DNA of 64,000 bases from Perkinsela sp. CCAP 1560/9 (GCA_965644495.1 CBFFSA010000022.1:105132-169131), one strand, 5' to 3'; numbered from the stretch's first letter, positions 121-50,860 are shown. The notes: a model not told the origin generated them from the sequence alone. Numbers and translations: made by a program.

Positions 121-739
121 CGACCTCGGCCACCCGATCGTCCTCCGAGATGTCTGATCCTGATGCAGATGAGCTCTCCGATCCTTCGTCATGTGACATG
201 TCCGCTTGTCCGAGGTTCGCCTTCGTTAGATCAGAGCTACGGAGTATCACTTTTACCTTTTTCGGAGTTTTCTTCAGTCGTGTCTCTTTTCTGATCTTAA
301 TTTTCAAGGATGACTCTCCAGTTTGACTTCTTCGTAGAATTTCATTTCTCCGAACACTGGCAAAAGCGGTTTCCTCGTCTTTCGTGTTGTGGCGGCCGTG
401 GTCTGACGTTGGGTTTTTCTCGATGCTTTGCGCTTTGTGTTCCATCTTCTTTTGCCAGTTGAGGGGAATATGCTGTGGAATGGGGGTTGTGTACATGAGG
501 TCGTCGTACGTGCTAGCGTCTTGGATGAGTTTCTTGTTTGCCTCAAACTGGTCCCATGATCCAATCTCGTGTCTATTCGCTTGTTCCGTAAAGTTCAAGT
601 TGTGCTCCTTTACGCCAGTGGACCTCACTGCTGCAGTGTTCTGCTGCTGATGCGACGGCGTGCCTTGCGCCGCCCTCGGGGGAGGTTCTGACATAAAAGA
701 AAGAAAAGCAAAGTAGTAAAAATCAACAAGGTACAGAAA
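121..739 (-). pseudogene. 5' fragment of CRE-like element family A (second copy of ~16680-17298), with LsmAD-like N-terminus
   Basis: Near-identical reverse complement of 16680-17298; ATG at 694 (MSEPPPRAAQ...); SL remnant at 724-739. Confidence 0.85.
724..739 (-). other. Spliced-leader relic (3' 16 nt, TTTCTGTACCTTGTTG)
   Basis: Matches 3' end of the 39-nt consensus seen at 38543-38581 and 50822-50860; about 30 nt upstream of ATG. Confidence 0.75.
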
Positions 740-927
740 AGGTTCTTGTTAGGTTTTTTTTTTTTTTTGGACCTGAACCTGGAAATAAACTTCCACAAGT
801 GTGAAATCTTTATGAGACATGTTCACCTTCCCCCCTTCTCTCAATTTTCAAAGAGAAACTATCCCGAAAATGAAATCTATATAATTTTATAAGCTGACTC
901 AGCTTATAGTGATATTGTGTTTAGAAC

Positions 928-1516
928 TTATATACTATATTCTTGAGTTTGCGTGCAGCCGTCTAAGTATTTCTTTAGCTGCGCATAAATCCCTAATCCA
1001 TTAAGCTCCTGAATCGTCAGCTTCATTTCGAGTTCGACCTGTTTCCTGTTTAGCATGGCCGCGTCTGCTAGCGAGTGTACCAAATTCTGCGTATTGCGGT
1101 GCAAAGCGCCTCCTGCCAGTACGGGTAAACATTGAAATGAGTCTTCACGAATTAAGTTCGTACGTACATATGTGTTGGACTTTCGCTGCAGCGCGTCATT
1201 CATGAGCTGTGTGCATTTCTTTCCACGATTAGACATTGAGAGTTCGTGAATAACTGTCAGATCATAGAAGACCGCACCCGTGTTCCAATAGATCACGAGA
1301 TCGGGGCCAGACCGACAAAGTTTTTTTCCTGCACAAGTCTTCTGATGTACCAACTGGTTTTCCGGACTGATTGTAGATCGGCAAGCGATGCACTTCCACG
1401 TAGAAAAGTTTCTAGGTTCCGTTTCACATGGGATGCCTGCTTTCACGCATAGACGATGTAAAAATCCGACAAGTGAGTTATGTTTCACGGTCGTATTTAT
1501 ACCTGAACATTGAGCA
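928..1516 (-). pseudogene. 3' fragment of CRE-like non-LTR element (restriction-like endonuclease domain)
   Basis: KHNSLV...AGIPCETEPR...CxxC...HxxxC...SGPDLVIYW...FYDLTVIH motifs; 3' UTR and T-run (poly(A) on minus) at ~754-768. Confidence 0.85.
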
Positions 1517-1744
1517 TTTTTTTTTTTTTGTTTTCCGAAAACGAAAGCGTTCTAAAAATATATATATATCTTTCGGAAGGCATTTTTCTGTAGAATTCCG
1601 ATAGCTTTTTTTTTTTGACGTTATCCCTCCGGGTGTAGATCCTTAAGCTTTTTTTTTTTCGTATTCCTAATTTATCCTCCTACCTTTTCCACTTCTTCCT
1701 ATTACTACCTTATCCACCAAATAAGTCCAGACTCGGACTCGACT

Positions 1745-2330
1745 CTAATAAGCATACTCATCTTTCGGATCCGGTAAGTAGCTACGCAATTGCGCCTGGA
1801 CTATCGCTCCATTCAATTCCTGTTGAAGAAGCACAAAATCATTCAGAATCGCCTTGGGTTCGCGGTAGACCTTTTCCGCCAGGAGCTGTAGTAGAGATTT
1901 TGTGTTATTGTGGAGAGCCCCGCAGGACAATATAGGGAGGCATTGAAATTGATCATTTCGCAACATAGTTGATTTTACATATTTCGCATGCTTCCGAGCG
2001 ATGGCGATTGAGCACAGCCTGGGATATGGGTGAGGGCGTTTCGGTTATTGAGGAGAATACCGCACCCTGGAAACAATAGACTGGTAGGTAGATCTGGGTG
2101 TTGGGCATTTAGTCGTGGCATAATCGCGAGTTTGAAGAGATGGGAAGGGATGTACTTCGCGTTGGAAAGGATCCAGTCGCTGTTTCCTTTGAAGGATGTG
2201 GCTTGTAGAATGTGCTTAATGTCGGGATCCGTTTGCAACTCTTTCAATACTTCGACGATGAATGCTGGTGGAAGCTTTTTCGTCCACTGGTATGACTTTC
2301 ATTGTCGAGTTCTTAGGAATAGACGGGTGT
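1745..2330 (-). pseudogene. Internally deleted 3' fragment of CRE-like element
   Basis: ORFs 1975-2247 (AIMPRL...PGC...THIPGC) and 1745-1966 (FQCLPILSCGALH...QELNG) are homologous to the C-terminus of 12540-14756, with the intervening part missing. Confidence 0.8.
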
Positions 2331-2617
2331 GATGGCACCGCGTTGTCGATCCGAGCTTTTTTTTTAACCCATCTAACCTAAATTTATTCATTACTAACAA
2401 AGGAAAATTTTTTTTTTTACCTACCAAATAATTATATTAGGACCAGAATCCAATCAATATCCAAAAGACTCAAGGCGGGCATCCAACATTAGTTTTTTTT
2501 TTTTTTACATAATATGACCGGTCTTTTCAGATAATGAAAAATATGATTTTCTCTCATGTGTTGAGCCGGAACCAAAATTACTTTCTCAAGTTTTCATAAT
2601 TAATAAAGAATGGTTGA

Positions 2618-3253
2618 TTAAATCGCCGTATCTTCTCGGCTCTGCGGCACTAGAAATTTGCCAAGTTGCGAGAGAACAACCCATCCGTTGAATTCTTGTA
2701 ATCGAAGTGTAAAATCTTGGATCACGTAATCCCGCGCTAATCCGAGCTGATTTCCTTCTGGGTGACGAATGGTTGGGCTCTCGTCTTGCGACACTTTGTC
2801 AGCTCTTGTCTGAAGAAGGTTGAGTTGTTTGTTTCGCCGATTGAAGAAATTTGAAGACAGCAGTGCGTTCTTAATTGTGACTTTGCAGTCACTTTTCGGC
2901 AGTGGGGTCGGCGATCGACGCATCGACGGAGGAGGAGATTGTGGACACGCAGATGGCGTTGATGGTGGTGATGGCGGCGGTAGTGGCGGCGGAAGTGGCG
3001 GTGAAGTAGGTGACCGCGATGCGGCGGGGACGGGCGATGGAAGAGACGGAGTTTCAGTGGACAAAGTCGTGGGTGGTGAGGGCGGCGGGGGCGGCGGGGG
3101 CGGCGGGGGCGGCGAAGGAGAAGCGCTCGGTTCGGACGGAGCCTCAGGCGGTTTCTCCTCAATTGTTTTCTTCCTGCGACGGGTCGGAGGTAGAGGCTGT
3201 ACGACGGGAGCTACTCCCGTTTCTTTCGCCCGGCTCCGCGTGATCATGCCCAT
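2618..3253 (-). CDS. Pro-rich ORF of an internally deleted, SL-capped CRE-like derivative
   Basis: N-terminus MGMITRSRAKETGVAP resembles 50884 ORF; last ~40 aa (QDFTLRLQEFNGWVVLSQLGKFL) match the extreme C-terminus of CRE proteins; T-run at ~2493-2506. Confidence 0.6.
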   Translation of the reverse strand: MGMITRSRAKETGVAPVVQPLPPTRRRKKTIEEKPPEAPSEPSASPSPPPPPPPPPPPSPPTTLSTETPSLPSPVPAASRSPTSPPLPPPLPPPSPPSTPSACPQSPPPSMRRSPTPLPKSDCKVTIKNALLSSNFFNRRNKQLNLLQTRADKVSQDESPTIRHPEGNQLGLARDYVIQDFTLRLQEFNGWVVLSQLGKFLVPQSREDTAI

Positions 3254-3281
3254 GAAAGTGAGAAAGTAATAGAAAATAAAT

Positions 3282-3316
3282 CAACAAGGTACAGAAACTG
3301 TATCTTTATCGTTAAA
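3282..3316 (-). other. Spliced-leader relic (35 nt, nt 5-39)
   Basis: TTTAACGATAAAGATACAGTTTCTGTACCTTGTTG followed by a pyrimidine-rich leader and ATG at 3253. Confidence 0.85.
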
Positions 3317-15069: not shown

Positions 15070-16141
15070 TGTGATAATCATAATCTATTAATGTCCTTTA
15101 TTAAGACCTTCACCTTTATTAAGACCTTTAGGTAATACAATAGAAGTCTACGCATGGAAATTTAACCGAGGGGCTAATATCGGGTCAAATGACCCGGAAG
15201 GGGGTTATAATTTTCAAAAAAAAAAAAAAAAAAAAAAAAATACACCATCTTCCAGACCATGGGAGGGCACCCCCCTCAAATACACTCCTTTTTGTCGGCA
15301 TCCCCCTTCCCCGTCTCGTCCCATCACCCCCCTGCGCCGCATCCCCCCACCTCACCCTCCCTCCGCAGTGCGCTTGCCCCCCTGTTGTGTTTCTCTCTCG
15401 TGTCCCCCACCCCCGTGTCAGCAGCCAAAAGTATACAATACTTGCTCACGGGGTGGGGGCAGAGTTCCTGGCAGATGGGCCCGTGCTTCGCCTCCTCTCG
15501 CCCCTGCGTCAGTCCCCCCGTGTCTCTCTCCGCGCTCTTCTCCCTCGGCGTGACGACGTCTTTGTGTTTCGTGGCCTCCACGTCTCCCACCCTCGTACGG
15601 CAACCAAAAGTATTTATTACTGCTAACGGGGTGGGAGCGGAGGTGCAGGACCATACGGGCCTGGGTGCATGCGGATCGGTGAGTGGGGTAGGGAGTGAGG
15701 GAAGGGAAGTACGAGAGGGCTAAGAGGAGTAGGTGTGGAAAGTATGGGGAGTAAGGGAAAGTGAAGGGCCGTAAGTGTGGAAATTGTGGAAAAGTTGGAC
15801 TCCATACATAAAAAGTTAGACTCAATACTATTCCCCCCAATTATTTGAAGGAAACCCCCAATTATTTGCAAAAAAAAAAAAAAAAAATCAGAAATCCACG
15901 CCGAGGGGGCTCCATGAAACATATAAGTAACAAACAAATATAAGCAAATACCTATGACTAATTAATAGTTCACGTTTCGAAATTTAGCCGAGGGGCGGCT
16001 ATATATTTGCCTGCTGGCCCTTCGGGGCACATAATTTTCTCAAATTATGATGTAGTATTCTCTAATTGCATGGAGGGGGGTGTTTACTCGTTTGTTATAT
16101 TCTTGTTAGGTTGTTATTTTGTTACGTTTAAAGTTTTGTGT

Positions 16142-35758: not shown

Positions 35759-38498
35759 GATGCAACGTAAGCCGCGGAGGCGTGGAGAGCTGCGGATCTC
35801 AGACCTAATCCCCCATGACGCTTCAGTCGCTGTGCTTGAGATTGTGCTGACCTGTCCAGAGGACAGATGATTGCCTCTATAGCGGTCATGAGAAAGTCGT
35901 CTAAACGGGAGCAAAGGTGAATCAGGGACTGTGGGGGCGTGCTTCTCATGGCATACACCATTTGACAGAACCCCGCACATTGACGAATTAGGGCAAGCGC
36001 GACCTGGGGGTCCTGAATGTTGGTGATGGCATCGAGGGTATCCTCGGCTGGTTCTAGGGCGTGAGAAAGAAGATAAGCAGAGCAGTGGTCGGCGGATCCT
36101 ACAGGACTCCCTAGTATGTCAAAGTTCCCCTGCGAATTGATCTTCTCGTCGGGTATGTCTGGGAAGTAATCAGCCTGGTGGGCCGAGCTGGGGGAAGTAA
36201 TAATTTCGCATTTCGACGTATTGAGATACAAGTCCCATTGAGGTCCTACTCGGGCGATCGTGTCTAGGGCGTCTCTAACTTCCTGCGCCTGGCCAACGAG
36301 GACGCCATCGTCGAGATACCAGAGTTGGGCGGGAATATCAGTTTGAAGGTTAATGGCTTCTGAGAGCTCCAGGGCCACTAACGAGAAGAGCAATGGTCCT
36401 AGGGGATCGCCCTGTTGTACTCCTTCCTCGGAGGAGATGAATCGGGCCCCGTAGGTAAGAGAGCTGGGGTCGGAATAGCACCAATTGATCCAAGGGAAGA
36501 GTTCCGGGAAATATTCCTGTACTAGTGGAAGGAAGGCAGCCCTGCTTACGTTATTGAAAGCGTTACGTAGGTCCACTTTGCACATGACGAAGTTCGGGTT
36601 TTCCATATTGGACGACATGGCCAGGCGACACATGTGAATGACTCTTTCGGCCCCGGCTGGAGCTGCCACTCCGTACTGTTTGCCTTCAAAGAGCTCGCTC
36701 GCTTTGGGTCGGATTGCGTTGCATACGGCTTTGCTCGCTAATCGCCGAAGGGTTTCACCGGCAGCGATCGGACGAACATCATTTTCACCCTTTGATAGGG
36801 CGCATAAGCGCGCCCCTGCGAAGTGCGCCTGTACTTCAGAGGGTGCCTTCCCAGCTAGGAGGTGATTTGTTAGCTTTGTGAGGGATCGGAGAAAGTCATT
36901 TCCGTGTACGAGCAGTGCTGCCTGTAGGTGCTCTGGGCGTAATCCCATAGTGCCGGCAGAGGAACCCCTGTTGAAGCTCTTCAGCGTCTTTGCAACTTCG
37001 CGTTCGTCAAGTTCCAGTGGAGCGCAGTTCGGGGGCGGGCAGTTTTCGCACGAGTCAATTTGAAGACGACGGGGGTGTTTTTCTAGCAATTTTTCAAATG
37101 TTCGTCATCGTCAGGCGCCATTGGATCTGACGTTAGGGAGGCCAACCCTCTAGAGAGCTCGCCGTGGCGGACGAGGAGTTCTGCTCGAATCGCTGCCTTC
37201 TCGTCTTCGTCAGGGAATTCCGTTGGAGATTTTTGCTTTTTTCGACAGGCTACAATTGCTTCGCTCCATAGGTCCGAGTACTCTTGTTCCGCCCAACGCT
37301 GCATGCATTTATACGCATGTGAGGCATATGCCATGTGGCCTTTGCGGCCCCCTCGATGCGGAGCTGGTAAAACGCATTTGGGAAGCATGGCCAGAAGCGT
37401 CCATGCCTGTAAGGAGTTTTCAGAGACCGCGTTCCGAATGGCGGAGGAGAGGATTTCTTCCCAGATCTGGCGGCAACGATAAGGCACGTCTTTGCACGTA
37501 CTCAGCTGAAGAGAGCAGACAGAAGGAAGAGGTGGGAGCTCAAAGTTGGTGTTCTCTGGTGTTGGTGCGGTGCTCACTTCGTTGGGTGGAGTAAGAAGTT
37601 CGGGAGAAAGGAGCGCGACGGTTTTCGTTCCTTTGCAGCTGTGTGTGTGCGATGATCGTTTGTGGTTGTCGTAGTGGCGTCCGCATGAGGTGCATAGAAA
37701 ACGGCCTTCTCTGTACCACCATTCATTAGGGATGCTGTTACCGTGCCGGCATGCGACATGGTTATAGAAGGCTTGCCAGGATCCGCCATGCGACGGACTG
37801 CGCCATGAACATCCCTGGGCCGGGCACTCTCGGAGCGCGGCAGACTTTCCTTGGGACAATGAGTTGGGCTCAGCGAGGCTAACGCCAGCGTTTTCAATAT
37901 TCTGGGTTTCGTGTCTTCTTCCTGGTTGCTCTTGAGATGGGCCCGGAATAAGTTCATAAGGATGCAAGAGTGAAGGTGTCTCTGGGTCTACCCGGTATCG
38001 GATGAGCTTATTTCTCCGTGGAGTAGGGGTTTTCTTGGAGTGACCTTTAATGTCCTCATTGCTACGTGCTTGGGCGGATAGAGCAGTTTTGAGTGGTGTA
38101 CTTAGATGCTGTGTAGCATTCAAAGCCTCTTTCGTCTTCTTCGCTGGCGTTACTTGCCTGATAACAGCGGAGTGTTGCATCTCTTCATTTTCGACCTCCG
38201 TGTGACCTGTGTCCGGTGTTTCATTAACCCCACCTACGATCGCGTTCGTTCGGCGGATCCAATCTTCAGGAATATTCTGAGGGATGGGGGTCGTGTAAAG
38301 GTCTTCATGGTATGTGCTCGTCCCCGTGATTAAATGTTCGTTTCCTTTAAATTGGTCCCAAGACCCCGGTCGGTGAGTTCTGCCATTAATTTCTAAGCAT
38401 TTGTCGTCCGTCTCCATGGCTTCGGCTTCGTGGTCCGGATTTCCGCTGTTGTCGTCTATGGGAGGAAGTGTGACTGCGGGGGGGATGATACCAGACAT
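35759..38498 (-). pseudogene. CRE-like family B2 (LsmAD-like, Zn fingers, RT), frameshift at ~37090, 3'-truncated
   Basis: ORFs 37083-38627 and 35728-37089; QYGV, DLRNAFN, GVQQGDPLGP, WYLDDG; ATG at 38498. Confidence 0.9.
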
Positions 38499-38542
38499 AA
38501 AAATTAACCCGTACCTCGGAAAGAGATGAAATAGAAAAAATT

Positions 38543-38581
38543 CAACAAGGTACAGAAACTGTATCTTTATCGTTAAAGATT
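38543..38581 (-). other. Complete 39-nt spliced-leader copy
   Basis: AATCTTTAACGATAAAGATACAGTTTCTGTACCTTGTTG; contains the kinetoplastid SL core ACAGTTTCTGTAC..TTG; directly preceded by poly(A). Confidence 0.88.
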
Positions 38582-39200
38582 TTTTTTTTTTTTTTTTTTT
38601 TTGGGTATATGAATTTAAAACAAGCAATCAAATTGGCAATTCTTTTTATTTCCACAGAAGCATATTTTCTTTTTCTTTTTTTTCTCAGCCCAAAACTAGC
38701 AATTCACCTTTTTTTTTTTTTCTTTTTCTTTTTTCTCAGCCCAAAACTAGCAATTCAATCTCCCCTAAGTATATACGACAAATAAGACACAGTAAAAATT
38801 AAAACAAGCAATCCAGACCCAATCCATTCGCGCGTTCCGGACCGGGTCTTTCGACCTCTCCACGGCCTGACTTGTGAACCCTTCCCTTGCTATACGGGAG
38901 GGCGCAGGCGCGGGCCTGTGTCGACAACGACACGGTCACGAAACAGGATGCTGGCCGACGGGGAGGAGATTCACTACCCGTGTACTACCTCACTTGGGGT
39001 ACCTAGCCCTGACGGACTAGGCGTGAGCATAGACTCTGTCGACCCGACCAGCATCCGTACCGGGAGTTTCCCACGAAAGTCACCTGGCCATACCCCTGGT
39101 CATACACAACGAGAGCCGGGTCGGCGTTTGCCGCGGGAAAACGTTGTATAGCGGCCAGATTTCGCAGGCGAGGAAGTCTTTGGGTGTGGCGAGTGATCCA

Positions 39201-42200
39201 CTACTCGTTCCCATAGCCTAGGAGCGCTGAATCAGGACCCACAGCAGGCCGGCGTAGGACGAGCATGCGGGCTTGGGATCTCATGAGGGTTACATTTAGG
39301 GATGTAAGCAACCGGTGTAGAGCATCCCCTTTCGGTAAAATATCCCCGGAATTGGCATTGCATGCCCTACCTGCAGCAACCACCCTAAGGATTGACATTG
39401 CGCTAGGGCTCCACGAGCCAAACGATTCTACCACCATGGCGGTAAACTTCATTCGCACCGCTTCAGCCTCTTCTCGTTGTTTAGCCTTGTTGGCGGTCGC
39501 GTATTGCTCCGCAAACGACCCCGCCGTCACCCAGTTAGCGTCACGGACTGTGTCCGTATATTTTTGTTGCTGGACATGAGTGACAGCGAAGTCGAGTACG
39601 AGGGCCTGACCGCGACCGAAACTTCGGATGAATACGTCCCCAGGTCTGGTGAGTGCGCCACCCGGACCTATGTTCCCCAAACTCACTTCTCTTTGAGGGG
39701 CAAGCCCGGCCTTTGAACATTCCGCAGAGAATTGGGATACCAAGGCACTGTGCCGAGCAGTGATCCCGTGCCCGCATTTGCATGCCAGTGCGTGTTCACC
39801 CCCTGGGCCTAAGGGCTGTTTGCACTTTTCCATGGGGCAGGGACGGAGGCCCGGGTAGATGGTTTCCCCCAGCCACCAACGGATTAACATGCGAAACTCC
39901 GTGGGGGCGTACGCAAAGCCGTTCTTTTTGGACGGCAACACGAAAGCCCACTCCGACGCCCCTTCTCCCGTTTCCGAGCTCCACCGAGCCCTCGTGCTTG
40001 GATCAGCGTGGGCGAGTGCGTGTTCGAACGCGTGGGATGAAATAGCATGGCTCAGGTCCCTTTGTCGAGGTATGACCAATTTATTGTCTATTTCATGGAT
40101 CGGATTGGTTTGAAAGGGTTGGTGCTCTGAAACGGCCGAGCTTTGTAGAATTTTGCCCGTTTCATTGTCAACGATATTCTTCCCTGCGCGTTTGTTCACG
40201 TCGATCACTGCCTCATCGAAATCTTTTGCGTCCGTTGGATCCCAAAAGTCTTTCTCCGCTGCGAAGGCGACTGAGGCCACATAAGCGGAGGCAGAATGCT
40301 CCTCAGCTGAACGGAGTCCCAAGCCACCAAACCGTTTGCCTCTCTGTGCTTGGCGCCTTGCTGCGTCGCTGAATGGCCCGAAAAAGTGTGAGGTAGCGTC
40401 TTGCACTGCGTCGTCGAGACGTCGGCAGAGATCCTGGAGCTCCGACGTTGGGGTAGTACGGAGTGAGTAGACCATCTGACAGAAGCCCGTGCAATGCCGA
40501 ATAAGTGAAAGGGCTACCTGGGGGTCCTCGAGGTTGGTAATGGCTTCCAGCGAGTCCTCTGCGTGTTCAATGGCGTTGTCAAGGAGAAATTGACGGCGGA
40601 ACTCGGTTGTCCCTACAGGGCTACCTAACATATGGAAATTACCCTCAGTGTTTTTATTCGATCCAGGTAGGTCGGGGAAGACAGAAGAACGATGAGACGA
40701 TGCGGGGTGCGCAGCGAGTTCACATTTCGCAGCATTCAGATGTAAACCCCATCGCGGGCCGTTTAGTTCTAGCACATCAAATGCGTGTCGTACATCGCAT
40801 GATGCGCCCGCCAGTATTCCGTCATCTAGATACCATAGATTCAGGTCTAGTTTCGGTGTTGCCGCGTGGATTTCCGAAGCAAGCTCCCTCATAACCAGTG
40901 AGAAGAGGAGGGGGCCAAGGGGGTCGCCTTGTTGTACCCCTTCAGAAGACTTTACCGTACGCGTACCGAATGTGAGTAAACTTTCTGTAGAATAACACCA
41001 CTCTACATAATGACTGAGTTCGGGAAAGTGCATGCGCGTTAAATCAGTGAACCTGTCACGGGACACCTGGTTGAAGGCATTCCGGAGGTCTATTTTGCAT
41101 AGAAGGAAGTCGTCATCGTCTACGTGGGCCGCGAATGTCTGACGGCAAAGATGGATAACACGTTCCGCCCCGGCCGGTGTAGCGACCCCGTATTGGTGTC
41201 CCTTAAAAAGTTTGCGGGCTCTGGTTTTGGCAGAGAAGCAAGCAACTTTGCTGGCCAAGCGGCGAAGGGTTTCACCAGCGGCGATCGGGCGTACGTCGTG
41301 TTCCCCCTTCTTCAAGGCACACAATCGACCTCCAGCGTAGTGGCTTTTGACTTCTAATGGTGCTTTTCCGGCTAGCATGTGATTGGTGAACTTTGTGAGT
41401 ATTTCCAAAGGACCGGTCTGACCATCGTGATGACCATGTATAGCAACTTGCACGTGTTCCGGCCGCAGACCAAAGGCACCCCCGGAGGAACCCCGATGAA
41501 AAGTCGAGAGTGCCGCCGATACTTCATCCTCCGTCACTTTAAGAGGTTCCACGTCCACTGATGGGCTGGGTGTATCTGATGCGGAGAGTCGGGGGGGATG
41601 CTTTGCCTGAAGCTTTGCGTAAGTCTCATCATTGTCCGGAGCGAGTGGCGCAGATGTCAGTGCGGTCATGGCGCGTGAGAGCTCCCCGTCACGTACGAGT
41701 CTTTCGGCTCGTAGTGCGGATTTTTTCTCTTCTTCTTCGAGACTCTGCGCTTTCTCCACGCTTCTCTTCTTCTTGCCCGTGACGCTCTTGACAGCTTCAG
41801 CCCAGAGCGCCAGGAACTCTTTCTTGGACCAGCGAGAAAGGCATTTCCGTACGTGGGAAGCATACGATGTTTTCGCCCGGCTACCTCCTCGATGGGGGGC
41901 AGGTATAACGCATTTGGGCAGCATAGCGAGGAGAGTCCACGCTTCAATGGTATTCTCTCGGATTACCGAATCTAGACACCCGCAAAGCGCCTTTGCCCAC
42001 TCTGGTCGGCAGCTGTTGGGTATATCTTTGCAAGTGGTAATGGGCAAGGCGCATATGGAAAAGAGACTTGGAAGGGGTGTGTCACTGTTCATTATATAGG
42101 TTTCGTCGGTAGTGTTCTGGTCTGCCTGTGCGTCGGATATTTCGTTTTTCTCTAGCGGCACGTCAGCACTCGAGACAGAAGTGTCGTCACTCGGTGTGGG

Positions 42201-43226
42201 GTTCCGTTGAGTGTGCGTCGAGGAAGCGCGGAACGAGCAATTCTTAATATGAGCGTCCTGTTTGCTTAGATCATAATGTTTTTCACATTTTCGGCATCGA
42301 AATCTTCCTTCCCCTGTCCACCAGCTGTCCGGAGCTTCGTCTCCATGTCTGTGGGCTACGTGATTATAGTATGATTGCCATTGACCACCGTGCGGCCCCG
42401 TCGTCCAGGTACACCCCTGAATAGGACATTTCCGGAACGTGTCACTTTGTGAAAGTGCCTTTCTGGGTGTAGCAACCACATTTCTGGCTGTATTCGGTTG
42501 GGTGTAAGCTTTTTTAAGGGCTTGATCGTGGCGCTTGCGCTTTCCTTCGGGGGGGACGGGGGTTTGGTCTTTCGGAGGAGAGTCTGTGACATCCCCGTCA
42601 CTGCTATCACTTGTGGGAACACTACTCACTTGAGAATACTGGGTGGTCTTAGGGCTCTTCTTCTTTTTTCGTCTTCCTGGCCGTGCGCTGATCGAAAAAT
42701 CGAGGTCATTTTGAGTAAGGTCTGGAAATACTATGTCATTCTCGTTTTGTTGAGAGTCGTTCGGATTCGTTTTCCGGAGGACGCGTTCGCACTTCTCCTT
42801 TACAGCCTTATTTGATAACTTGGATTGGCTGAGCAAAGAAGAGTCAGAGCCTATGAATTGGAATCGAAAACCCCCGTTTTCCTCCTGAGCGCAATTTTTC
42901 TCCCCAAAGCGAGCACCTACATTTTCCTCCTGAAGGACATTGGAATGAATATCTGCCTCAGTCATTCCGTCAACGTGACCTGTGTCAGGTGTTGGGCCGG
43001 CAGGTGCGTTTGTTATGCTAAAGGCAATGTCTTCCGCTTGCTGTATTTTTTCAGGGGAAAGGTCCTGCGGTATTTCTGTGGTGTAAAGTAGTTCGTCGTA
43101 AGTACTCTTCCCGTTCGTTAGGTGTTCGTTAGCCTTAAATTGATCATACGACCCTACCTTGTGAGAGGCAGCTTCCTTCCCAAAGTTACAGTCCGTTCGT
43201 GTTTTAGAACTCGTTGACACGCCCAT
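39201..43226 (-). CDS. Intact CRE-like polyprotein (LsmAD-like, 2 Zn fingers, RT, CCHC, restriction-like endonuclease)
   Basis: ATG at 43226; GVQQGDPLGP, WYLDDG, CPMEKC..H..C, RH, RPGD..LDFAV, K, VVESFG. Confidence 0.93.
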   Translation of the reverse strand: MGVSTSSKTRTDCNFGKEAASHKVGSYDQFKANEHLTNGKSTYDELLYTTEIPQDLSPEKIQQAEDIAFSITNAPAGPTPDTGHVDGMTEADIHSNVLQEENVGARFGEKNCAQEENGGFRFQFIGSDSSLLSQSKLSNKAVKEKCERVLRKTNPNDSQQNENDIVFPDLTQNDLDFSISARPGRRKKKKSPKTTQYSQVSSVPTSDSSDGDVTDSPPKDQTPVPPEGKRKRHDQALKKAYTQPNTARNVVATPRKALSQSDTFRKCPIQGCTWTTGPHGGQWQSYYNHVAHRHGDEAPDSWWTGEGRFRCRKCEKHYDLSKQDAHIKNCSFRASSTHTQRNPTPSDDTSVSSADVPLEKNEISDAQADQNTTDETYIMNSDTPLPSLFSICALPITTCKDIPNSCRPEWAKALCGCLDSVIRENTIEAWTLLAMLPKCVIPAPHRGGSRAKTSYASHVRKCLSRWSKKEFLALWAEAVKSVTGKKKRSVEKAQSLEEEEKKSALRAERLVRDGELSRAMTALTSAPLAPDNDETYAKLQAKHPPRLSASDTPSPSVDVEPLKVTEDEVSAALSTFHRGSSGGAFGLRPEHVQVAIHGHHDGQTGPLEILTKFTNHMLAGKAPLEVKSHYAGGRLCALKKGEHDVRPIAAGETLRRLASKVACFSAKTRARKLFKGHQYGVATPAGAERVIHLCRQTFAAHVDDDDFLLCKIDLRNAFNQVSRDRFTDLTRMHFPELSHYVEWCYSTESLLTFGTRTVKSSEGVQQGDPLGPLLFSLVMRELASEIHAATPKLDLNLWYLDDGILAGASCDVRHAFDVLELNGPRWGLHLNAAKCELAAHPASSHRSSVFPDLPGSNKNTEGNFHMLGSPVGTTEFRRQFLLDNAIEHAEDSLEAITNLEDPQVALSLIRHCTGFCQMVYSLRTTPTSELQDLCRRLDDAVQDATSHFFGPFSDAARRQAQRGKRFGGLGLRSAEEHSASAYVASVAFAAEKDFWDPTDAKDFDEAVIDVNKRAGKNIVDNETGKILQSSAVSEHQPFQTNPIHEIDNKLVIPRQRDLSHAISSHAFEHALAHADPSTRARWSSETGEGASEWAFVLPSKKNGFAYAPTEFRMLIRWWLGETIYPGLRPCPMEKCKQPLGPGGEHALACKCGHGITARHSALVSQFSAECSKAGLAPQREVSLGNIGPGGALTRPGDVFIRSFGRGQALVLDFAVTHVQQQKYTDTVRDANWVTAGSFAEQYATANKAKQREEAEAVRMKFTAMVVESFGSWSPSAMSILRVVAAGRACNANSGDILPKGDALHRLLTSLNVTLMRSQARMLVLRRPAVGPDSALLGYGNE

Positions 43227-43259
43227 GTAATGGTTGAATGTAAGAAAGAAAAAATAATT

Positions 43260-43297
43260 CAACAAGGTACAGAAACTGTATCTTTATCGTTAAAGAT
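43260..43297 (-). other. Spliced-leader copy (38 nt)
   Basis: ATCTTTAACGATAAAGATACAGTTTCTGTACCTTGTTG, 33 nt before ATG. Confidence 0.88.
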
Positions 43298-43301: not shown

Positions 43302-43303
<2 letters not shown>

Positions 43304-43334
<31 letters not shown>

Positions 43335-44456
43335 AATTAATAAGGGGGGAGAAGTATGAATCGCGGCATTGCCTCTATATTTTGACCCAGTAGACGAACC
43401 AAGTACATAGTAGGTCCATTAGGGGGGTATATGAATTTAAAGGGGTATATGAATTTAAAATAAAATTTTTTTTTTTTTTTTTTAGATATCGTAAAAGAAC
43501 CATGAAGGTCCATTGGGGGGGGTATATGATTTGTAAACAAGCAATCAAATTAGCAATTTCACATGTTGTAGCCCAAAACTAGTAATTCAACCTGCCTTAA
43601 GTTATTTATGATTCTGATAACAATAATAATAAAAAAGGAAGCAATCCACGCCCAATCCATCCGCGCGTTCCATTTTTTTTTTTTTTTTTTTTTTGTTTTT
43701 ATGCAAATAAAGAAAATTTTTCTCTCTCTTTCTCCTCTTTCTCACCTCTTGACATACTTTTCCCACCTTTCTCCCTACTTTCCTGCTTTCCCCTACCCAA
43801 CTTTTCAACTTTTCAGGGGGGGTAAGGTCTCCCTCAGCTTCGCCTCACCCGGCCTGCAGGCGGCTCCTCAACCATTCGCGCGTTCCGGACCGGGTCTTTC
43901 GACCTCTCCACGGCCTGACTTGTGGACCTTTTTTTTTTTTTTTTTTTTTTTAGGGGGGAGAAGTATGAATCGCGGCATTGCCTCTATATTTTGACCCAGT
44001 AGACGAACCAAGTAGGTCCATTGGGGGGGTATACGAGTTGAAAACAAGTAATCAAATTAGCAATTCTTTTTGTTTCCACAGATGTACCTTTTGTTTTTTC
44101 TCTCAGCCCAAAACTAGCAATTTTTTTTTTTTTTTTTTTTGTTTTTATGCAAATAAAGAAATTTTTTCTCTCTCTCTTTCTCCTCTTTCTCACCTCTTGA
44201 CATACTTTTCCCACCTTTCTCCCTACTTTCCTGCTTTCCCCTACCCAACTTTTCAACTTTTCAGGGGGGGTAAGGTCTCCCTCAGCTTCGCCTCACCCGG
44301 CCTGCAGGCGGCTCCTCAACCATTCGCGCGTTCCGGACCGGGTCTTTCGAACTCTCCACGGCCTGACTTGTGGACCCTTCCCTTGTTATACGGGAGGGCG
44401 CAGGCGCGGGCCTGTGTCAACAGCGACACGGTCACGTGTCGCTGTTTTGTCACGTG
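43304..44456 (-). repeat. Mosaic of short CRE-B 3' UTR fragments separated by poly(A) tracts, with internal duplication (~43695-43930 / ~44140-44378)
   Basis: Six T-runs, each adjoining pieces homologous to 3985-4290 or 38600-38940. Confidence 0.85.
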
Positions 44457-44609
44457 TTTTTTTTTTTTTTTTTTTTTTTTTTTTGAGCCTTCTCCCAAAG
44501 ATCGTTCGTATTATCCTAAATCTCGCAGGCATTCTAAACACGGATAATCGTTGTGAATAATAATAGGAACTTTTAAGAGCTTTTCTAATGTGCGAACTTG
44601 TTGGTCGAC

Positions 44610-47600
44610 TCACTGACGCAGTCCACCAATCCAATGTGCTTCTGGAATATACTCGCGGAGCTGCGATACAATAGTATACGCTGCTAGCTTTTCTATCTCG
44701 AGTTGGAAGGCCTCACGTACGTCTTCGTACTTTTGTTTGGCTCGTTGGGATAATGCCTTGAGGAGGGTTTTGGTGTCGTTGTGCAGAAGACCGCAGTCAG
44801 AGGCGGCCAGGCAACGAAAAGAGTCGCTTTCTACGCCTTTCTCCGTAACGTACTTCTTGAATTTCTTGTCGAGCACGTGCTGCATCAGCGCTGTACTTGT
44901 TTGTTTGGCATAGCTGCTGCAACAAGTGTGAACAACGGTAAAATCATACAGGACCTCCCCCATGTGGGGCCACATAATAGCAAGATCAGTACCGGATCGG
45001 ATTCTGCGGGCTTTGCAAGGATGATGTTCAGCTACTTCCGCTGAGATGGAACACTTGCACTTAGTACAGAAAAACGAAGAATGGATGCGCGGTTCGATAA
45101 TACAAGGGAGACCAGCTTTGGAGCACAAATCTGCGAGGTACCTCACTATGTGTGAGTGCTTTCTGGTGCAATTCATGCCCGAGCACCGGGAGCATCCTGC
45201 GACGTGTGGTATAATGCTGGTAGGAGATTCATGGCCACAGCATCCAGGGCATATAACATCGGCCGGTGCGTTATGTAATCCGATGCCCAAACGCATCATC
45301 AAAGTGTATCGGAAGAGGTACGGGTTTACATAATTGCTGGTGCTTTCTAAATGCATGTTTGATTCCTTTGTACGCTTCAATAAAAGTCCCATGTGAGAAT
45401 CCTTCTGCAGCTCAGTTATCTGTTTATCGTGTTCTGCACTTAGCTTCTTTTTCAATAGCTTGCGCGCTGCCTCTCCTCGACTTTGCGGTTGTTTCACAGC
45501 TTTTTCGCTGCCTTTCTGATCTACCGGAGCGTTATTGGGTTTAAGGTGCTCATCAATAGATTTGCTGGCAGTTTCGAAGAAATGTTTTTGCTTCAGAGTC
45601 GAGGAAATTAAGCCTAGGCCACCGAGTTTCTGTGGTAGAGCGGCGAGTTTCAGGGCGTTTGCGTCTGCTCCACTCCACTTTTCTAGAACTTTGTTTACTT
45701 GGTTCTCGAAGGATTGTGCTAGTTGGAAAGTAGCGCCTGGCCGATGTACTCGTAGATGGTAATCGTGCCGTGGAATCGTACAACGGCGGAGAATGGCAAG
45801 AGACAAATTACTGGGACCCATAAGCAACAACCTGCGGAATAGGCACTTGTGTTTCTCCATTTTCTTGATCAGCAGATTTTCCACGACTTGGTCTGTACCT
45901 ACGTATGCGCCTAAGACTTTTATCGCATCACTGCAAAAGTTTACTCCAAGTTTTTCCAACGGAGGAGGCTGAGCTATGTTGGGAATGTTCTTCTGAAACC
46001 AATCGCATTTCTGGAAATTAATTCGGAGGTTCATCTCTGCGGCGATCTCACGCAGGTAAAAGAAAGCTGCCTCCAATGCTTGCACGTTTTTGGAGCTCAA
46101 AGTCACATCGTCTTGGTATGCTCGGATCTTCACGTCAGGATAGAGGTGCATGAGTTCTCGTAGCGGGCCTTGCAAAAGTGCGCAGAAGTACATTGATGAA
46201 AGTTCCGATCCTTGGCGAATTCCTGAAGAGCTTTCGATGGTAGCAAACAGAGCATTGTGCGCAAAAAATAGCAGCTCAGAGGGAATCCCATATTCTAGGT
46301 AGAATAGGCGCATGAAAGGCTTGAAAATGGGATTACCAAGGAGTGCCTCAGCAATGGCGTTGCGTTGTGGTGTATTATACGCGTTGCTAAAATCGACGGT
46401 GAGGAGAGCATGTCCTTCTTCGTATTCATTTAAAAGTTCGTGAACGATGGACTCACATGCGTTTTTTTGCAAAATGCCTCGTTGAATTGGGGAGAAAAAA
46501 TTTTGCAGAGCGTTTTCATGTCGTTGTAGAAGGATGGAACCGCAAATCTTCAGAATGGTATCCCCCATCGCAATAGGTCGAATTCCATTTTGAGGTTTCG
46601 CTAGCGCGATGATTCTGCATCGGGTTAGACGTTTTCGCACATTCAGAGGAACTTCGCCGTTGATGACATCCCGAAGCATGTGGCAAAGTGAAAGACATGA
46701 CTCTTCGTCGTCTACGAGCAGTCGCATCATGCTTTCACTCAGGCCGGTTGGTCCTGGTGAAGCGCCTCTGGATAATTTTTCGGTCGCTAGGCGAACCTCT
46801 GATTTCTCAACAACGCCAGTCCGTGGGAAGTCTGCTTCCGGGATTCGTATGGCGTCGCCTTCAGGATGAAGTTGTTGAAGCTTTCGCACTTTTTCTTCAG
46901 GAGTGAGAGCTGATTCCTTGTAGACATTGTCCAGGATCCGAGTTGCTTTGCCAAGGTTTCCTGCCCGCGCCGTCTGTAGGGCGTGCCTGATCGAACGCCT
47001 GTCAATTTCTAACTCCGCCCGTTGTTCCGCACTCAAGTTGCTAGCTTCCAAGTTTTCTCGGTCGTTGCGAACATGAGCTACTTTTTGGTTTCGTCGAATT
47101 GCTTGACGTACTGTCGCAAGTGAATCGCGAGGCGCATTCAAAAATTTGTGCCATATCGCCTCTTTTTCTGAGTCAAGCTCCGCCGCTGCATATCCCCGAA
47201 TTATCGCACGGAAAATCGCCACAACATGAACCGCGAAAGATGGGCCTATTTGAGCCATAGGCGGGAGCGGATCAAGGTCACTCTGACCGTCTTCGCATGA
47301 GATGTGCTCCGCTTGTTCCTCCAAATTTTGTGTCGGCATCTCGATTTTGAATAACTTAGTGGCTTGGAGGTTACAGATTCTGATTTTATTGGACGGTGGA
47401 AGATAAAGAAAACCGCATGGACCATCGTGACCTAGAGCCGGCTCGTATGAAATCTTGACTTTCACGGTTGATTTTCGCACGGTCCTGCCTACAACGATGC
47501 CGTTTGACTTGTAGTTTGTAGTGTTCTGTCGGAAGCCCCATTCGATCACACATTCTGTACCCTTGCCCCACTTGGAAACGATGTTGTACACTTGGTCGGG

Positions 47601-48098
47601 CGATTTGTTGCCGGCCTGTGTCATTAGCTCCTGTACTCGATCTTGCGTCGATCCATCGTCGTCCAGACACATTGTATCACTGGTCTCGCTTTCTGTTTCG
47701 GACATTTCTTTGGCTGGGTCCTCTTGGATATGGTTTTCGTCATGGGCTATGTTCTCGTGTGATTGACTCGTAGATCCGATGCGGAAGTTCTTGGCTTTGA
47801 TTTTGATTAGATTCCGCGATGTGATTTCACACGGAGGCTCATGGTCCGCCCAATTCGGGGCTAGTGTTTTGGAACCTATTATCTTGATCTTTGGAGTCTT
47901 CTTCACCTTCACTGGTGTCTCCGTGTGCGATCCTGATTCTTCTGCTACCTTTATTCCGTTCGTCTTGCTTTGATCTCGTTGAGTACGTTGTTTTTCAACT
48001 CTCCCGTGAGACTTCCCGTTGTTCACTGTTGTTCTGCTGCCCTTTTTCCGCGTGTTTTCGGAATCTAAACGAGAAGACGTACGAGAAAGGCGTGTCAT
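44610..48098 (-). CDS. Intact CRE-like polyprotein family A2 (Tudor-like, RT, CCHC, RLE)
   Basis: GASPGPTG, RPIAMGD, DFSNAYN, GIRQGS, AYQDD, CPGC..HVAGC, SGTD..LYD; T-run 44457-44484. Confidence 0.92.
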   Translation of the reverse strand: MTRLSRTSSRLDSENTRKKGSRTTVNNGKSHGRVEKQRTQRDQSKTNGIKVAEESGSHTETPVKVKKTPKIKIIGSKTLAPNWADHEPPCEITSRNLIKIKAKNFRIGSTSQSHENIAHDENHIQEDPAKEMSETESETSDTMCLDDDGSTQDRVQELMTQAGNKSPDQVYNIVSKWGKGTECVIEWGFRQNTTNYKSNGIVVGRTVRKSTVKVKISYEPALGHDGPCGFLYLPPSNKIRICNLQATKLFKIEMPTQNLEEQAEHISCEDGQSDLDPLPPMAQIGPSFAVHVVAIFRAIIRGYAAAELDSEKEAIWHKFLNAPRDSLATVRQAIRRNQKVAHVRNDRENLEASNLSAEQRAELEIDRRSIRHALQTARAGNLGKATRILDNVYKESALTPEEKVRKLQQLHPEGDAIRIPEADFPRTGVVEKSEVRLATEKLSRGASPGPTGLSESMMRLLVDDEESCLSLCHMLRDVINGEVPLNVRKRLTRCRIIALAKPQNGIRPIAMGDTILKICGSILLQRHENALQNFFSPIQRGILQKNACESIVHELLNEYEEGHALLTVDFSNAYNTPQRNAIAEALLGNPIFKPFMRLFYLEYGIPSELLFFAHNALFATIESSSGIRQGSELSSMYFCALLQGPLRELMHLYPDVKIRAYQDDVTLSSKNVQALEAAFFYLREIAAEMNLRINFQKCDWFQKNIPNIAQPPPLEKLGVNFCSDAIKVLGAYVGTDQVVENLLIKKMEKHKCLFRRLLLMGPSNLSLAILRRCTIPRHDYHLRVHRPGATFQLAQSFENQVNKVLEKWSGADANALKLAALPQKLGGLGLISSTLKQKHFFETASKSIDEHLKPNNAPVDQKGSEKAVKQPQSRGEAARKLLKKKLSAEHDKQITELQKDSHMGLLLKRTKESNMHLESTSNYVNPYLFRYTLMMRLGIGLHNAPADVICPGCCGHESPTSIIPHVAGCSRCSGMNCTRKHSHIVRYLADLCSKAGLPCIIEPRIHSSFFCTKCKCSISAEVAEHHPCKARRIRSGTDLAIMWPHMGEVLYDFTVVHTCCSSYAKQTSTALMQHVLDKKFKKYVTEKGVESDSFRCLAASDCGLLHNDTKTLLKALSQRAKQKYEDVREAFQLEIEKLAAYTIVSQLREYIPEAHWIGGLRQ

Positions 48099-48129
48099 AA
48101 GCGTAGAAAAATAGAAAATTAAAATGAAT

Positions 48130-48142
48130 CAACAAGGTACAG
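48130..48142 (-). other. Spliced-leader relic (3' 13 nt, CTGTACCTTGTTG)
   Basis: 31 nt before ATG 48098, same position as the other copies. Confidence 0.7.
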
Positions 48143-49545
48143 TAAGCATGATTTTTAATTCAGGTTTCGTTGCAGCAAACAATACAATATCATCCGCGTA
48201 ATCAATGTCAGAAATTCTCAGTTCTTTGAGTCCTCGACTTTTTGTCCCGGATGTGTGCGTTACCAGCCCGAGCTTGTTCATGTCAATATCCTCTACCAAA
48301 ATTCGGTCCAGAACCATAACAAATAAGTAAGGAGCTAGAACATCTCCTTGAAGAGTGCCGCTTACAATAGGAAAATCTTCCGTTGTTCCGTAAGGGGTCC
48401 GTACATGAGATCGAAGATTTTTGTAAATTGACATCACAGCTGCACTCAGTTTTGGAGGTATTTCAAAAGCTCGGAGAGCCTCTTCAATCAATGATTCATC
48501 TTACTTTGCTTGCTTGTTTGCTCGTTTTTCCTAGAAGGATTGTTATTCCAGGTTGAAAAGTGATATTCAAAAAGTGTATCAATATCCACCTAATTGCCAC
48601 GGTGCCAATACTACTGTCGAATTGTTTGGTCCATTGTATTCTCTCAAAATGATTGAAAAACATAGCACGGGAAGCCTCTTTTATGGAGTCGAACGATATT
48701 GATGGAAAGGCTTTCTTGAAGTCTACGAAACATGCGTACACGCCTGTTCCTCTGTGCGATTTGCTTGCAATCTCCATAAATGTTGCCTGCGCGCCTGCTG
48801 TAGATCGATTCGGGCGGAAACCAAATTGGTTCCCACGGAGAGACTTCTCTACTGCTGGTTGGATGCGGTTTAGGATCATTCTGTTCAACACTTTAACCAC
48901 ATGGTTGACAAGGCATATTGGTCTCCAATTTCCCAGTGATTGCAAGTTTCCATTTTTTGGCAGCGGTACCTGTAATATGGACTTCCAAGATTGTTCCGCG
49001 TTCCCAGTTTCATGAACATCGTTCATTATATCAAGCAAAACAGTTCTCAACTCGCTGTCATCTGAAATTGCTCTGAGCGCCTCGATAGGTATGCTATCAG
49101 CCCCAGGAGCTTTTCCCGATTTGACCATTTGAAGAGCTGAAGACAATTCTTCTGGGCGAAATTTTCCGTCGTCAATCTGTTCTAAGCGTTTCGGTGCCGT
49201 TGGAAATCGAATGGTGCCTTTTTCAGCCACTGTCTCGTGTCCGACTTTCGAAAAATGATTTCTAACTGCTTCGAGACTTTCTTTGGCAGTTCTCCCAAAT
49301 ATTGCAAATTCACTTCTATTATCCCCAACAATATTTCGTATGGTTCTATACGCTGATTTAGGCGCCGATTTTAGTTCCTTTTCCAAAATTTCACACTCAG
49401 TTAAAATAGATGTCTCAATTCGATCAGAAAATATCTTAGTCGCATGTTTAAATTCACTTTTGCTGGAAACTACTTTCATAATATTCTTTAAGTTTAACAC
49501 ATCTGGGTCAATTTCCGAAAGAGCCGCATTATCCGCATTTTTTAT
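48143..49545 (-). pseudogene. RT fragments of a further APE-LINE family, interrupted at ~48495-48670
   Basis: KAPGAD, WRPI, QFGFR, DFKKAF; GTLQGDVLAP, DYADD. Confidence 0.88.
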
Positions 49546-49549
49546 TTGA

Positions 49550-50108
49550 TCCCCTTGACGCTGAAGGGATCGCATGTAGGCTGTTACTGTCGACTTTTGC
49601 AATTGACCCCCAGATCGGAATATGATTTGTATCAGACTCTTTGCATACGTATGTGCGGTTTGGATGCTGATGGTACCCGTTGAGTTTGCGGATTGATTAG
49701 TCTCATTTTCGACTCCAAGAAGCATATTATGCACCAATCTTCGCTTGGAACGTCATTTCCGAGATTTTCCTTCCAAACTGTATACTGTTTGTATACGCTG
49801 GAAAGGTGATTCCAGCGCGAGTTGGATTTCTCTTCTAATAGACGATCCTGGCCTAGTACGATCATTTGTTGAACGTCGACTGTAGGAATCGCGGCTCTTG
49901 TTTCTCTGTTGCCTTCCACGCGGTCGAGGAAGAGGTCTTCGATCTCCAGTAAGTTCTTTGCTCTTGATCTTGTTACTATCCCTGTAAAAGCCCTGTTGCT
50001 CGTGGAAGGTTGCTTGTACTGAGTACTTCGGACATGACTGGTAGTGCCGGCGCCGGTTGTGGTTTCCGTTTGATTTCCGTATGTTTCGTTTCCCGGGTAC
50101 GAGGACAC
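49550..50108 (-). pseudogene. N-terminal fragment of a second VIPER-like tyrosine recombinase (frameshifted)
   Basis: CFLES...TAHTYAKSL...VTAYMRSLQRQG aligns by eye with LFLET...TRMGYAGAL...LSLYVKALQAQG of 21586-22770. Confidence 0.6.
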
Positions 50109-50821
50109 TTCCGTGAGTACTCATCGAAACGCCCACGTGTCAAAACGAAACTCATCGAAACGAAAGAAACTCATCGAAGGTGATTTTAATTACTTTTGAG
50201 GTGGTAGCTGCATTTTCGACTAAAAAACAAATACACAATACTGCGGAAGTGGCAGACATAGGTCCTCAGTGCGCGATCTCAGTGCGGAGTTAATATCCTC
50301 CACCTCTCGTGCTCTAATCTTGAGCGCCGAAAATCCCATTCTGCTCGGTTGGACCTCGAGGCACTGGTTGGCGTAAACGTCGGGATGAATATGAAGGGTG
50401 TAGCTGTGGGGCGTGTCTTTTGGAAGTCTGTTTGTAAGACAGATTAGTATGAAGTAAAGCCCTTGAAGGGGCAAAGATATCAGAACGCTGAAAATATGGA
50501 GTAAAAAAATGCATTAGAAATCAACGGACCCTTTTTTTAAGAATAAATTATAAGAAGATATACGTTGACAACGCCTGCGTAGCGAAAACTACGAAATTCA
50601 GTGAGCTTCGCAAATTGCTTCCCACTAACGACGCACAGGGGAATCCTACGCGGGGTACGGCTCAGGCCCGCTCACGCGGGCCCTCGCCGTTTCGCGGCCG
50701 CGCGCACCCCCGCTCACGCGGGGGCCCCCGCGCGGCCAAAATGGGTACTAAAATTTGTTATCAAGGTAGTTGGGCTTCGCAAATTGCTTCCCACGAATCT
50801 AGAGAGAAGCACACGTACAAT

Positions 50822-50860
50822 AATCTTTAACGATAAAGATACAGTTTCTGCACCTTGTTG
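50822..50860 (+). other. Complete 39-nt spliced-leader copy (one T>C change)
   Basis: AATCTTTAACGATAAAGATACAGTTTCTGCACCTTGTTG, 23 nt before ATG 50884. Confidence 0.88.

Follow-up and report, generated by a model that had tools for sequence, protein, structure and literature searches.

Retrotransposons headed by a spliced leader in Perkinsela sp. CCAP 1560/9

Spliced-leader copies and the elements behind them

Every kinetoplastid mRNA needs a spliced leader (SL), and ordinary genes lack individual promoters; wherever it lands in such a genome, a mobile element must therefore regain an exact, translatable 5' end. Here we describe a 64,000-nucleotide (nt) stretch of the Perkinsela sp. CCAP 1560/9 genome (GCA_965644495.1, CBFFSA010000022.1:105132-169131; below, the window) in which retrotransposons begin with the leader itself or with its 3' part, a head that most copies probably inherit through DNA. 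The window belongs to an assembly of 21 Mb in 110 contigs, and genome-wide counts come from pattern searches and from 90 loci of ~3 kb each (loci are cited by L number, contigs by C number). All evidence is genomic DNA, from the assembly and four DNA runs, and the SL-headed elements are known here from DNA alone.

The window holds seven intron-less SL copies, at 724(-), 3282(-), 16695(+), 38543(-), 43260(-), 48130(-) and 50860(+), each position being that of the last G of the closing TTG. The original prediction had placed copies at these points, and they far exceed what dinucleotide-shuffled sequence yields (expectation 0.00 for a 20-mer, 0.00 for a 39-mer and 0.13 for a 13-mer, vs 8 found for the last). 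The downstream layout that it described also holds at all seven: ..TTG, then A, then 23-44 nt of pyrimidine-rich (T/C) leader, then ATG. Two lengths had to be corrected. The SL exon is 38 nt rather than 39 nt (gene start AACTTTAACG), the earlier 39-mer having comprised one flanking base and a T at SL base 2, and the head at 48130, taken to be 13 nt long, has 16 nt with one mismatch (TTaCTG..). The 5' ends had been called ragged; head lengths do vary, but the copies at 724 and 16695 carry an identical 16-nt stub that is a feature of their whole family. The upstream flanks, described as unrelated, are so only in part: three of the seven heads lie at an A-run or a few bases past one, and the flank upstream of the 50860 head (unit 50823-51159) recurs at two other loci. 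The A-run ahead of the heads at 38543 and 43260 is in each case the preceding element's poly(A) tail. A further SL 13-mer with one mismatch (TGTACCTGGTTGA), at 56934-56946 (+), falls within an open reading frame (ORF) for APE, reverse transcriptase (RT) and RNase H and was taken as a chance match.

As had been proposed, the heads at 724/16695, 38543, 43260 and 48130 lead RT-bearing ORFs (Pfam RVT_1), and those at 3282 and 50860 lead Pro-rich ORFs, which had no Pfam match. RT ORFs were typed with Pfam: among the window ORFs, RVT_1 was found in five (E 2e-16 to 3e-20), and the same search gave no APE domain match. For the RT of a 1341-aa ORF, the best solved match was the R2 / R2Bm RT (8gh6, E=5e-8). 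C-terminal to the RT, a CCHC motif (CPMEKCKQPLGPGGEHALAC) and a PD..D..K motif (RPGD..LVLDFAVTH) were read by eye in the translation. The marks of target-primed insertion are also present, namely a 3' A-tail, target-site duplications (TSDs) and 5' truncations. Together these features indicate that the SL-headed elements are retrotransposons without long terminal repeats (non-LTR) that pair an RT with a probable restriction-like endonuclease (RLE), accompanied by short non-autonomous partners. The label 'CRE-like', by which they had been introduced, is not established. Their closest named relatives are sponge elements at ~33% identity, there was no named CRE-clade protein among the 120 best matches, and in place of the hallmark of that clade (insertion in the SL exon, with halves of the SL gene on either side) we found flanks made up of A-tracts, other elements and a Gag-like ORF.

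Most SL-headed autonomous families open with a conserved N-terminal motif, ..HKLGSWDQFxANKxL..STYxEELYTTP, seen at 16857-17075 of the window, in the ORFs at 38498 and 43226, and at L015, L018, L020, L029, L030, L084 and L090. It gave weak Pfam LsmAD (ataxin-2) matches below the cut-off, and one metagenome relative has an MLLE/PABC domain in place of the LsmAD-like motif. The LsmAD-like motif and the MLLE/PABC domain hint at contact with poly(A)-binding protein.

The most completely delimited insertion is that of a stub-family element on the plus strand (16674-20716). The element itself spans 16680-20710, with its stub at 16680-16695, ORFs at 16725-18227 (weak LsmAD-like match) and 18227-20287 (RT), and a 3' end reading ..GGGGC(A)8TTTGACTGTG; the TSD AAGTGA stands at 16674-16679 and again at 20711-20716. 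When the insertion and one TSD copy were removed in silico, the flanks formed the single open frame of a Gag-like CCHC ORF. This target ORF, of ~513 codons with a CCHC knuckle, occupies 16007-16679 and 20717-21582 of the window and occurs also at L056 and L022; a second copy of it hosts another stub-family element at a different position. The stub-family copy at the window's edge (1-739, minus strand) has its stub, TTTCTGTACCTTGTTG, at 724-739 and its ATG at 694, and its body runs out of the window start. It is 99.4% identical to the copy at 16680 over 620 nt, and the similarity begins exactly at the stub.

A head-to-tail stack fills the minus strand from 48145 to 35728. It starts with a stub-headed element (44457-48145; 16-nt stub with one mismatch at 48130-48145) that encodes a 1162-aa RT ORF at 44610-48098, ends in an A28 tail at 44457-44484, and is inserted within the RT gene of a different element, in its YADD region. 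Five short A-tailed pieces follow in tandem (43304-44456), several of which match element 3' ends; on the plus strand their tails appear as T-runs at 43304-43332, 43466-43483, 43673-43694, 43929-43951 and 44121-44140. The next member is a full-length element (38582-43297) whose head, at 43260-43297, is of the ATC type, that is, with T at SL base 2. A29 + TAGAAT lies upstream of it, its poly(A) is at 38582-38602, and it has a single uninterrupted ORF (39201-43226, 1341 aa from the ATG) with the domain order zinc fingers, RT, CCHC, putative PD..D..K endonuclease. Abutting that poly(A) is the 38-nt ATC-type head (38543-38580) of the last element (35728-38580), in which ORFs at 37083-38498 and 35728-37089 (RT) overlap in different frames; 35728 is an ORF limit.

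The remaining units are short. On the minus strand, the element at 2493-3316 has a head of SL bases 4-38 (3282-3316), a Pro-rich ORF of 211 aa at 2618-3253 and an A14 tail at 2493-2506. On the plus strand, a full ATC-type head with the change T29C (50823-50860) is followed by a Pro-rich ORF that stops after 91 aa (50884-51159). The plus-strand stretch 15216-15887 consists of an older element's A25 tract (15216-15240) and a copy, at 15241-15887 (L075), of the non-autonomous ~700-bp family F2, of which we found 37 copies. This copy has an ORF at 15259-15723 and an A18 tail, and it is cut within the 5' untranslated region (UTR), hence carries no SL.

The SL RNA genes and the limits of the inserted unit

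In the assembly, the SL 32-mer occurs in 364 copies, and the last 16 SL bases are followed by a base other than G, and are thus intron-less, at 489 sites; the SL followed by GTATGAGAAG was found at only 8 sites. Two of the 8 form a tandem on C1 at ~661.3 kb, 297 bp apart and with common upstream/promoter sequence. Their exon, AACTTTAACGATAAAGATACAGTTTCTGTACCTTGTTG, is 38 nt long, begins AAC, ends TTG and is followed by GTATGAGAAG; the intron of roughly 70 nt is predicted to fold into stem-loops, and a 5S rRNA gene lies ~0.4 kb from the pair. No Rfam family matched the gene, and an Sm site was not clearly identified in its sequence. On this organization we identify the tandem pair as the genuine SL RNA genes; the true gene with a GT intron, which the original prediction had expected to exist, thus lies elsewhere in the genome. 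In the DNA runs, depth over the gene flanks relative to that of retrocopy contigs hints at 9-30 SL gene copies, a range not to be read as a copy number. Each 297-bp repeat also holds a tRNA-like stretch on the opposite strand (..GGTTCGATTCCCGCCCCGTCA; L042:1650-1725 and 1950-2020 (-)), between the SL RNA genes.

The other six of the 8 sites hold retro-copies of unspliced SL RNA that lack its 5' part, contain both exon and intron sequence, and end in ..GGGGCTT + A's (L041 and L044-L048, at C1:410k, C2:801k, C20:11k, C25:24k, C49:34k and C86:12k). At the 3' end each passes into other sequence; in 5/6 this partner consists of short tandem repeats, (GGAGGTGGCGGAGTGG)n for L044/L048 and units of 18-19 bp for L045-L047. 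These retro-copies look like template-jump chimeras. They resemble the chimeric U6/LINE-1 retrocopies that arise via template switching (10.1101/2025.02.02.635956), with a different small nuclear RNA apparently drawn into the same process; the likeness concerns this side product, not the SL-headed elements.

The SL-headed elements lie outside any SL gene. In family F2, short duplications precede the head and follow the poly(A) (CCAACAAGGT in L074, CGTTGT in L089, TCTAAA in L063-67, TGAA in L079/80), so that, as at 16674-20716 in the window, the TSDs enclose SL, body and tail, with the leader joined to the body without an intron. Because the SL is part of the transposed unit, the RNA template must have carried the leader, as had been proposed, and SL-gene-specific insertion is rejected. 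The earlier reading had named, as the pattern that would speak against it, an SL promoter upstream of the elements and an SL intron downstream; in the flanks examined we found neither.

Insertion into SL sequences, with the flanking SL as a gene remnant or target duplication, is nevertheless what the known relatives SLACS, CZAR and CRE would lead one to expect, being SL-gene-specific (PMC5814959, PMC2696322), and the recurring order 'poly(A) then SL' is what should stand downstream of an insertion in an SL gene. We give this reading almost no credence. TSDs of non-SL sequence around the heads rule out the SL as insertion target, the heads have no SL promoter upstream and no intron downstream, and the only two intact SL genes in the assembly are both uninterrupted. 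Full-head families insert at A-tracts or a few bases past them, typically at the poly(A) tails of older copies, which explains both the recurrent 'poly(A) then SL' and the stack between 48145 and 35728. The F2 copy at 15241, truncated past its SL, lies against an A25 tract as well, which makes the A-tract, and not the SL, the target. The stub family inserts elsewhere, with a 6-bp duplication. SL-headed copies also recur at regular spacings of ~3.8, 5.1 and 8-12 kb with identical flanks (L063-L067 at C1:1.47-1.50 Mb; C16:201072/204833/208594; C1:2477636-2492914), so part of the copy number reflects tandem or segmental duplication, not new insertion.

Probable inheritance and renewal of the leader

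For how a copy that carries the leader in place of a splice acceptor is expressed again, two options had been suggested: master copies, with polypyrimidine-AG where the SL would be, or the genomic SL acting as initiator. Masters did not turn up. There was no polypyrimidine-AG in place of the SL in 37 F2 and 12 stub-family copies, and in the assembly we obtained 0 matches to AG + UTR patterns for three F2 junction types and 0 matches for retrocopies that had used the strong CCAG acceptor immediately upstream of the F2 ATG. The genomic SL as initiator fits better, as a candidate. Likewise, of the proposal that the elements are copied from mature trans-spliced mRNA, the leader-bearing RNA template stands and fresh splicing from masters in each round is unsupported.

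Both the state and the length of the head are specific to the family. In the stub family (16695), 12 of 12 copies have their first base between SL bases 21 and 25, the 16-nt stub being shared by most, and their flanks are unrelated; the element at 48130 has this same stub. A non-coding family of ~545 nt (L031-L040; ~90 copies genome-wide) mostly begins at SL base 11 or 12 and runs through base 38, followed by GTACATTTT.., a strong hairpin (CCGGCAACGGGCATA..TATGCCCGTTGCCGG) and an end, ..GCGCATGA[AT]CA, that lacks poly(A). About a dozen full ATC heads are followed by GT and may be full-headed copies of the ~545-nt family. In F2 the copies were too alike for a tree to be resolved, and the variant junction TTG|TTTTC occurs on several body haplotypes.

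The second base of the leader differs between the SL RNA genes and most full heads. Both SL RNA genes in the assembly have A there (AAC). Among 53 sites at which the preceding base is not A, T is by far the commonest letter at SL base 2 (41), ahead of A (8, including the two genes), G (2) and C (2). Its state also differs with the base that follows the head: full heads are ATC in 79 and AAC in 30 cases where A comes next, 7 and 10 where T does, and 14 and 0 where G does, the two true genes apart (chi-square for heterogeneity by junction class, p=0.0013). In each of the four DNA runs, the single promoter-linked SL contig has no other letter at base 2 than the gene's A; read depth differs by no more than about a third between the two sides of the SL, promoter and intron; and no ATC head in the assembly carries the GTATGAGAAG intron. 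By these counts, the SL RNA genes seen here do not encode the T at base 2, and how often it occurs varies with the family.

Heads acquired anew can be recognized by what they sit on. We took a census of SL ends with a second SL end ≤25 nt downstream, which gave 65 sites, among them 45 clean tandems in which a head is followed by a relic of an older one. The relics measure 10 nt (x30), 16 nt (x9), 8 nt (x3), 22 nt (x2) and 17 nt (x1), with no other length, and 41/45 begin right after a G (AG or TG) inside the old head (binomial p ~1e-29), the sites being TG at SL bases 27-28, AG at 21-22 and AG at 15-16. Three loci have an SL, a 16-nt relic and a 10-nt relic; since two relics are present, at least two rounds took place there. 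Only 4 relics of 1-9 nt precede the usual UTR start, none of them of 3 nt, and the absence of 3-nt relics indicates that TG at bases 34-35 is not a common acceptor. Heads on a relic must have been added in trans. We propose that TG can serve as an acceptor here, which would account for the 10-nt relic; in a kinetoplastid Perkinsela, TG is the trans-splice acceptor at 26% of sites (PMC5601477). Full heads that sit on a relic and reach base 2 have A in 5/5 and T in 0/5 (p=0.003 against the remaining heads).

Because masters are missing, the stub is constant, the state of base 2 follows the junction class and relic-borne heads read A, we think it probable that most heads are inherited with the element through DNA; a fresh leader would then read AAC, and ATC would mark heads copied from DNA. 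Under this model the leader would first have been gained by trans-splicing onto element RNA, after which the leader, whole or as its 3' part, would head the DNA copies and run straight into a short 5' UTR rich in A/T and pyrimidines. The source copies would themselves be SL-headed, and their RNA would have its 5' end, by initiation or by trimming, at base 1 of the genomic head; our best guess is that transcription initiates there with the help of the upstream A-tract. An occasional read-through transcript of an SL-headed copy would receive a fresh leader at an AG or TG in the old head, leaving relics of 16, 22 or 10 nt. Splicing at the final TG of the head would renew it and leave no mark, and AAC heads at the usual junction would find their explanation in this. 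In our judgement, a genomic head that is inherited and now and then re-spliced is likely to be the correct account, and it fits the data best overall.

Several observations weigh against this model. SL base 2 takes all four letters, and in two independent retro-copies of SL RNA it is G; this variability looks like that of a modified base misread by RT, which would favour a fresh leader in each round. Even very diverged families match the cell's SL exactly over bases 3-38, for which pure inheritance would need strong selection. Because of duplicated loci and shared descent, neither the five relic-bearing heads nor the family counts are wholly independent observations, and AAC beside an A-tract is indistinguishable from a head truncated at C3. 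An unassembled SL gene of the ATC type with another promoter is excluded by the assembly only, as the 31-mer read contigs break inside the SL and do not link base 2 to the intron. The use of TG as acceptor is deduced, not observed in this organism. No promoter or ribozyme was identified in the head; a search of the 5' ends for known ribozymes and RNAs gave none above threshold in the window, with chance-level matches only at two heads.

Some of these points are what one would expect if every round used a fresh leader, the copy being made from an mRNA just trans-spliced at rare masters or at the terminal TG of a genomic head, with T at base 2 a misread modified cap-proximal base. We consider this unlikely. 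It would accommodate the four bases at base 2, the G in the SL RNA retro-copies and the match of bases 3-38 to the cell's SL in every family, and a relative in another host bears that host's SL variant (see below); the relics show that re-splicing occurs, and TG acceptors are documented in Perkinsela (PMC5601477). However, the heads certainly added in trans read A (T in 0/5, vs 86/121 elsewhere), base 2 varies by junction class, masters turned up neither in 49 copies of two families nor in pattern searches, and the constant 16-nt stub would require an enzyme that always stops at the same base. In trypanosomatid cap-4 the pairing-blocking bases are 1 and 4, and both are read faithfully in the heads here.

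The leader might instead be supplied at the stage of cDNA. On coming to the 5' end of an element RNA, in many cases a shortened one, the RT would jump onto a free SL exon at its 3' end or, within SL homology, switch template to another SL-bearing RNA. The six truncated unspliced SL RNA chimeras indicate that jumps onto SL RNA occur. At three loci (L063, L021, L028) an SL 5' fragment (bases 3-19, 2-16 or 3-11) with 1-5 odd bases stands directly upstream of a full head, within the TSD, and such stutters would suit this explanation, as would junctions and relics that do not follow G (F2c after CC, F2d after TA, the 8-nt relic after TA). The stutters and the F2c and F2d junctions fit neither splicing nor simple inheritance and may themselves be template jumps. 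As a general source of heads we nonetheless find it improbable, more so than fresh splicing in every round. Relics start after AG or TG in 41/45 cases, which suits acceptor choice and not random RNA ends; the junctions are clean, with no extra bases; a free SL exon is a rare intermediate; and the ATC heads would still be unaccounted for.

Related systems and what the elements mean

We found no published description of SL-headed elements in Euglenozoa in a literature search. The habit does not appear confined to this genome. On a metagenome contig (L092), an RT-RLE relative with 39% identity and N-terminal ubiquitin domains starts, after an A-rich flank, with TACAGTTTCTGTACTTTATTG|ATTTTTAAATTTAAAATG, the 3' part of a different SL variant; the contigs of six other relatives, of 7 looked at, had no SL core. 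Because L092 bears a different variant, we infer that over evolutionary time the head is re-matched to its host's leader.

SLACS, CZAR, CRE1 and CRE2 of trypanosomatids (PMC5814959, PMC2696322) are similar in belonging to Euglenozoa, in having an RT followed by an RLE and N-terminal zinc fingers, and in their association with the SL. They insert into SL RNA genes, whose halves flank them, whereas the elements described here lie outside SL genes, have the SL within the TSD, and target A-tracts or other sites. Another Perkinsela sp. has one intact SL RNA gene and >500 dispersed SL RNA fragments, some near retrotransposons, as well as non-AG acceptors (PMC5601477). Its few SL genes, its hundreds of dispersed SL pieces ascribed to reverse transcription and its 38-bp exon all resemble what we found, and its frequent use of TG as acceptor matches what we propose for the 10-nt relic. 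Those pieces, however, are described as decayed SL RNA genes, stand-alone introns and exons with 20 nt of intron, not element heads, and the SL intron is 468 bp there vs roughly 70 nt here.

A close parallel to SL-bearing copies is found in dinoflagellates, where retrogenes have DNA-encoded DinoSL relicts (Slamovits and Keeling 2008, reviewed in PMC6050394; PMC5585692). There, mRNA-derived DNA copies likewise keep their 5' spliced leader, and repeated rounds likewise give tandem truncated relics that start after an acceptor within the leader (PMC6050394). The tagged units there are host genes; here they are retrotransposon families and their non-autonomous partners, in which the head, unlike that of the retrogenes as portrayed there, is a regular heritable part of the element with a diagnostic T at SL base 2. 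The commonest relic here follows TG, the dinoflagellate relic AG. The same review includes the proposal that the retroposed leader acts as a promoter (PMC6050394), the sole precedent that we can cite for such a role of the head.

L1Tc/ingi, also kinetoplastid non-LTR elements, solve the same problem of remaking an exact 5' end from any genomic site, with the internal promoter Pr77 and a ribozyme like that of hepatitis delta virus; Pr77 binds factors that transcribe SL RNA genes (PMC1874656, PMC3185411, PMC8190864). The sequence of Pr77 is unrelated to the SL and its transcripts are unspliced, and our ribozyme search gave no match. The known answers to the need for a 5' end are thus to live in SL genes, as SLACS/CRE do, or to carry Pr77 and a ribozyme, as L1Tc/ingi do; carrying the leader itself would be a third.

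The elements are also a datable genomic record of trans-splicing, from which one can read which acceptors served, TG among them, and how many rounds took place. The single base by which element-borne leaders differ from gene-borne ones offers a simple marker for separating cis-encoded from trans-spliced leaders in RNA data. More tentatively, and with the odds in our view somewhat against it, the genomic leader may be a self-sufficient heritable 5' module, one that yields leader-like transcripts with T at base 2 without an SL gene or acceptor, whose own AG and TG, the final two bases among them, accept fresh leaders onto read-through RNA, and which is re-matched to the host's SL as hosts diverge. 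If so, a retrotransposon superfamily would have made the host's universal mRNA 5' end its promoter-and-acceptor cassette.

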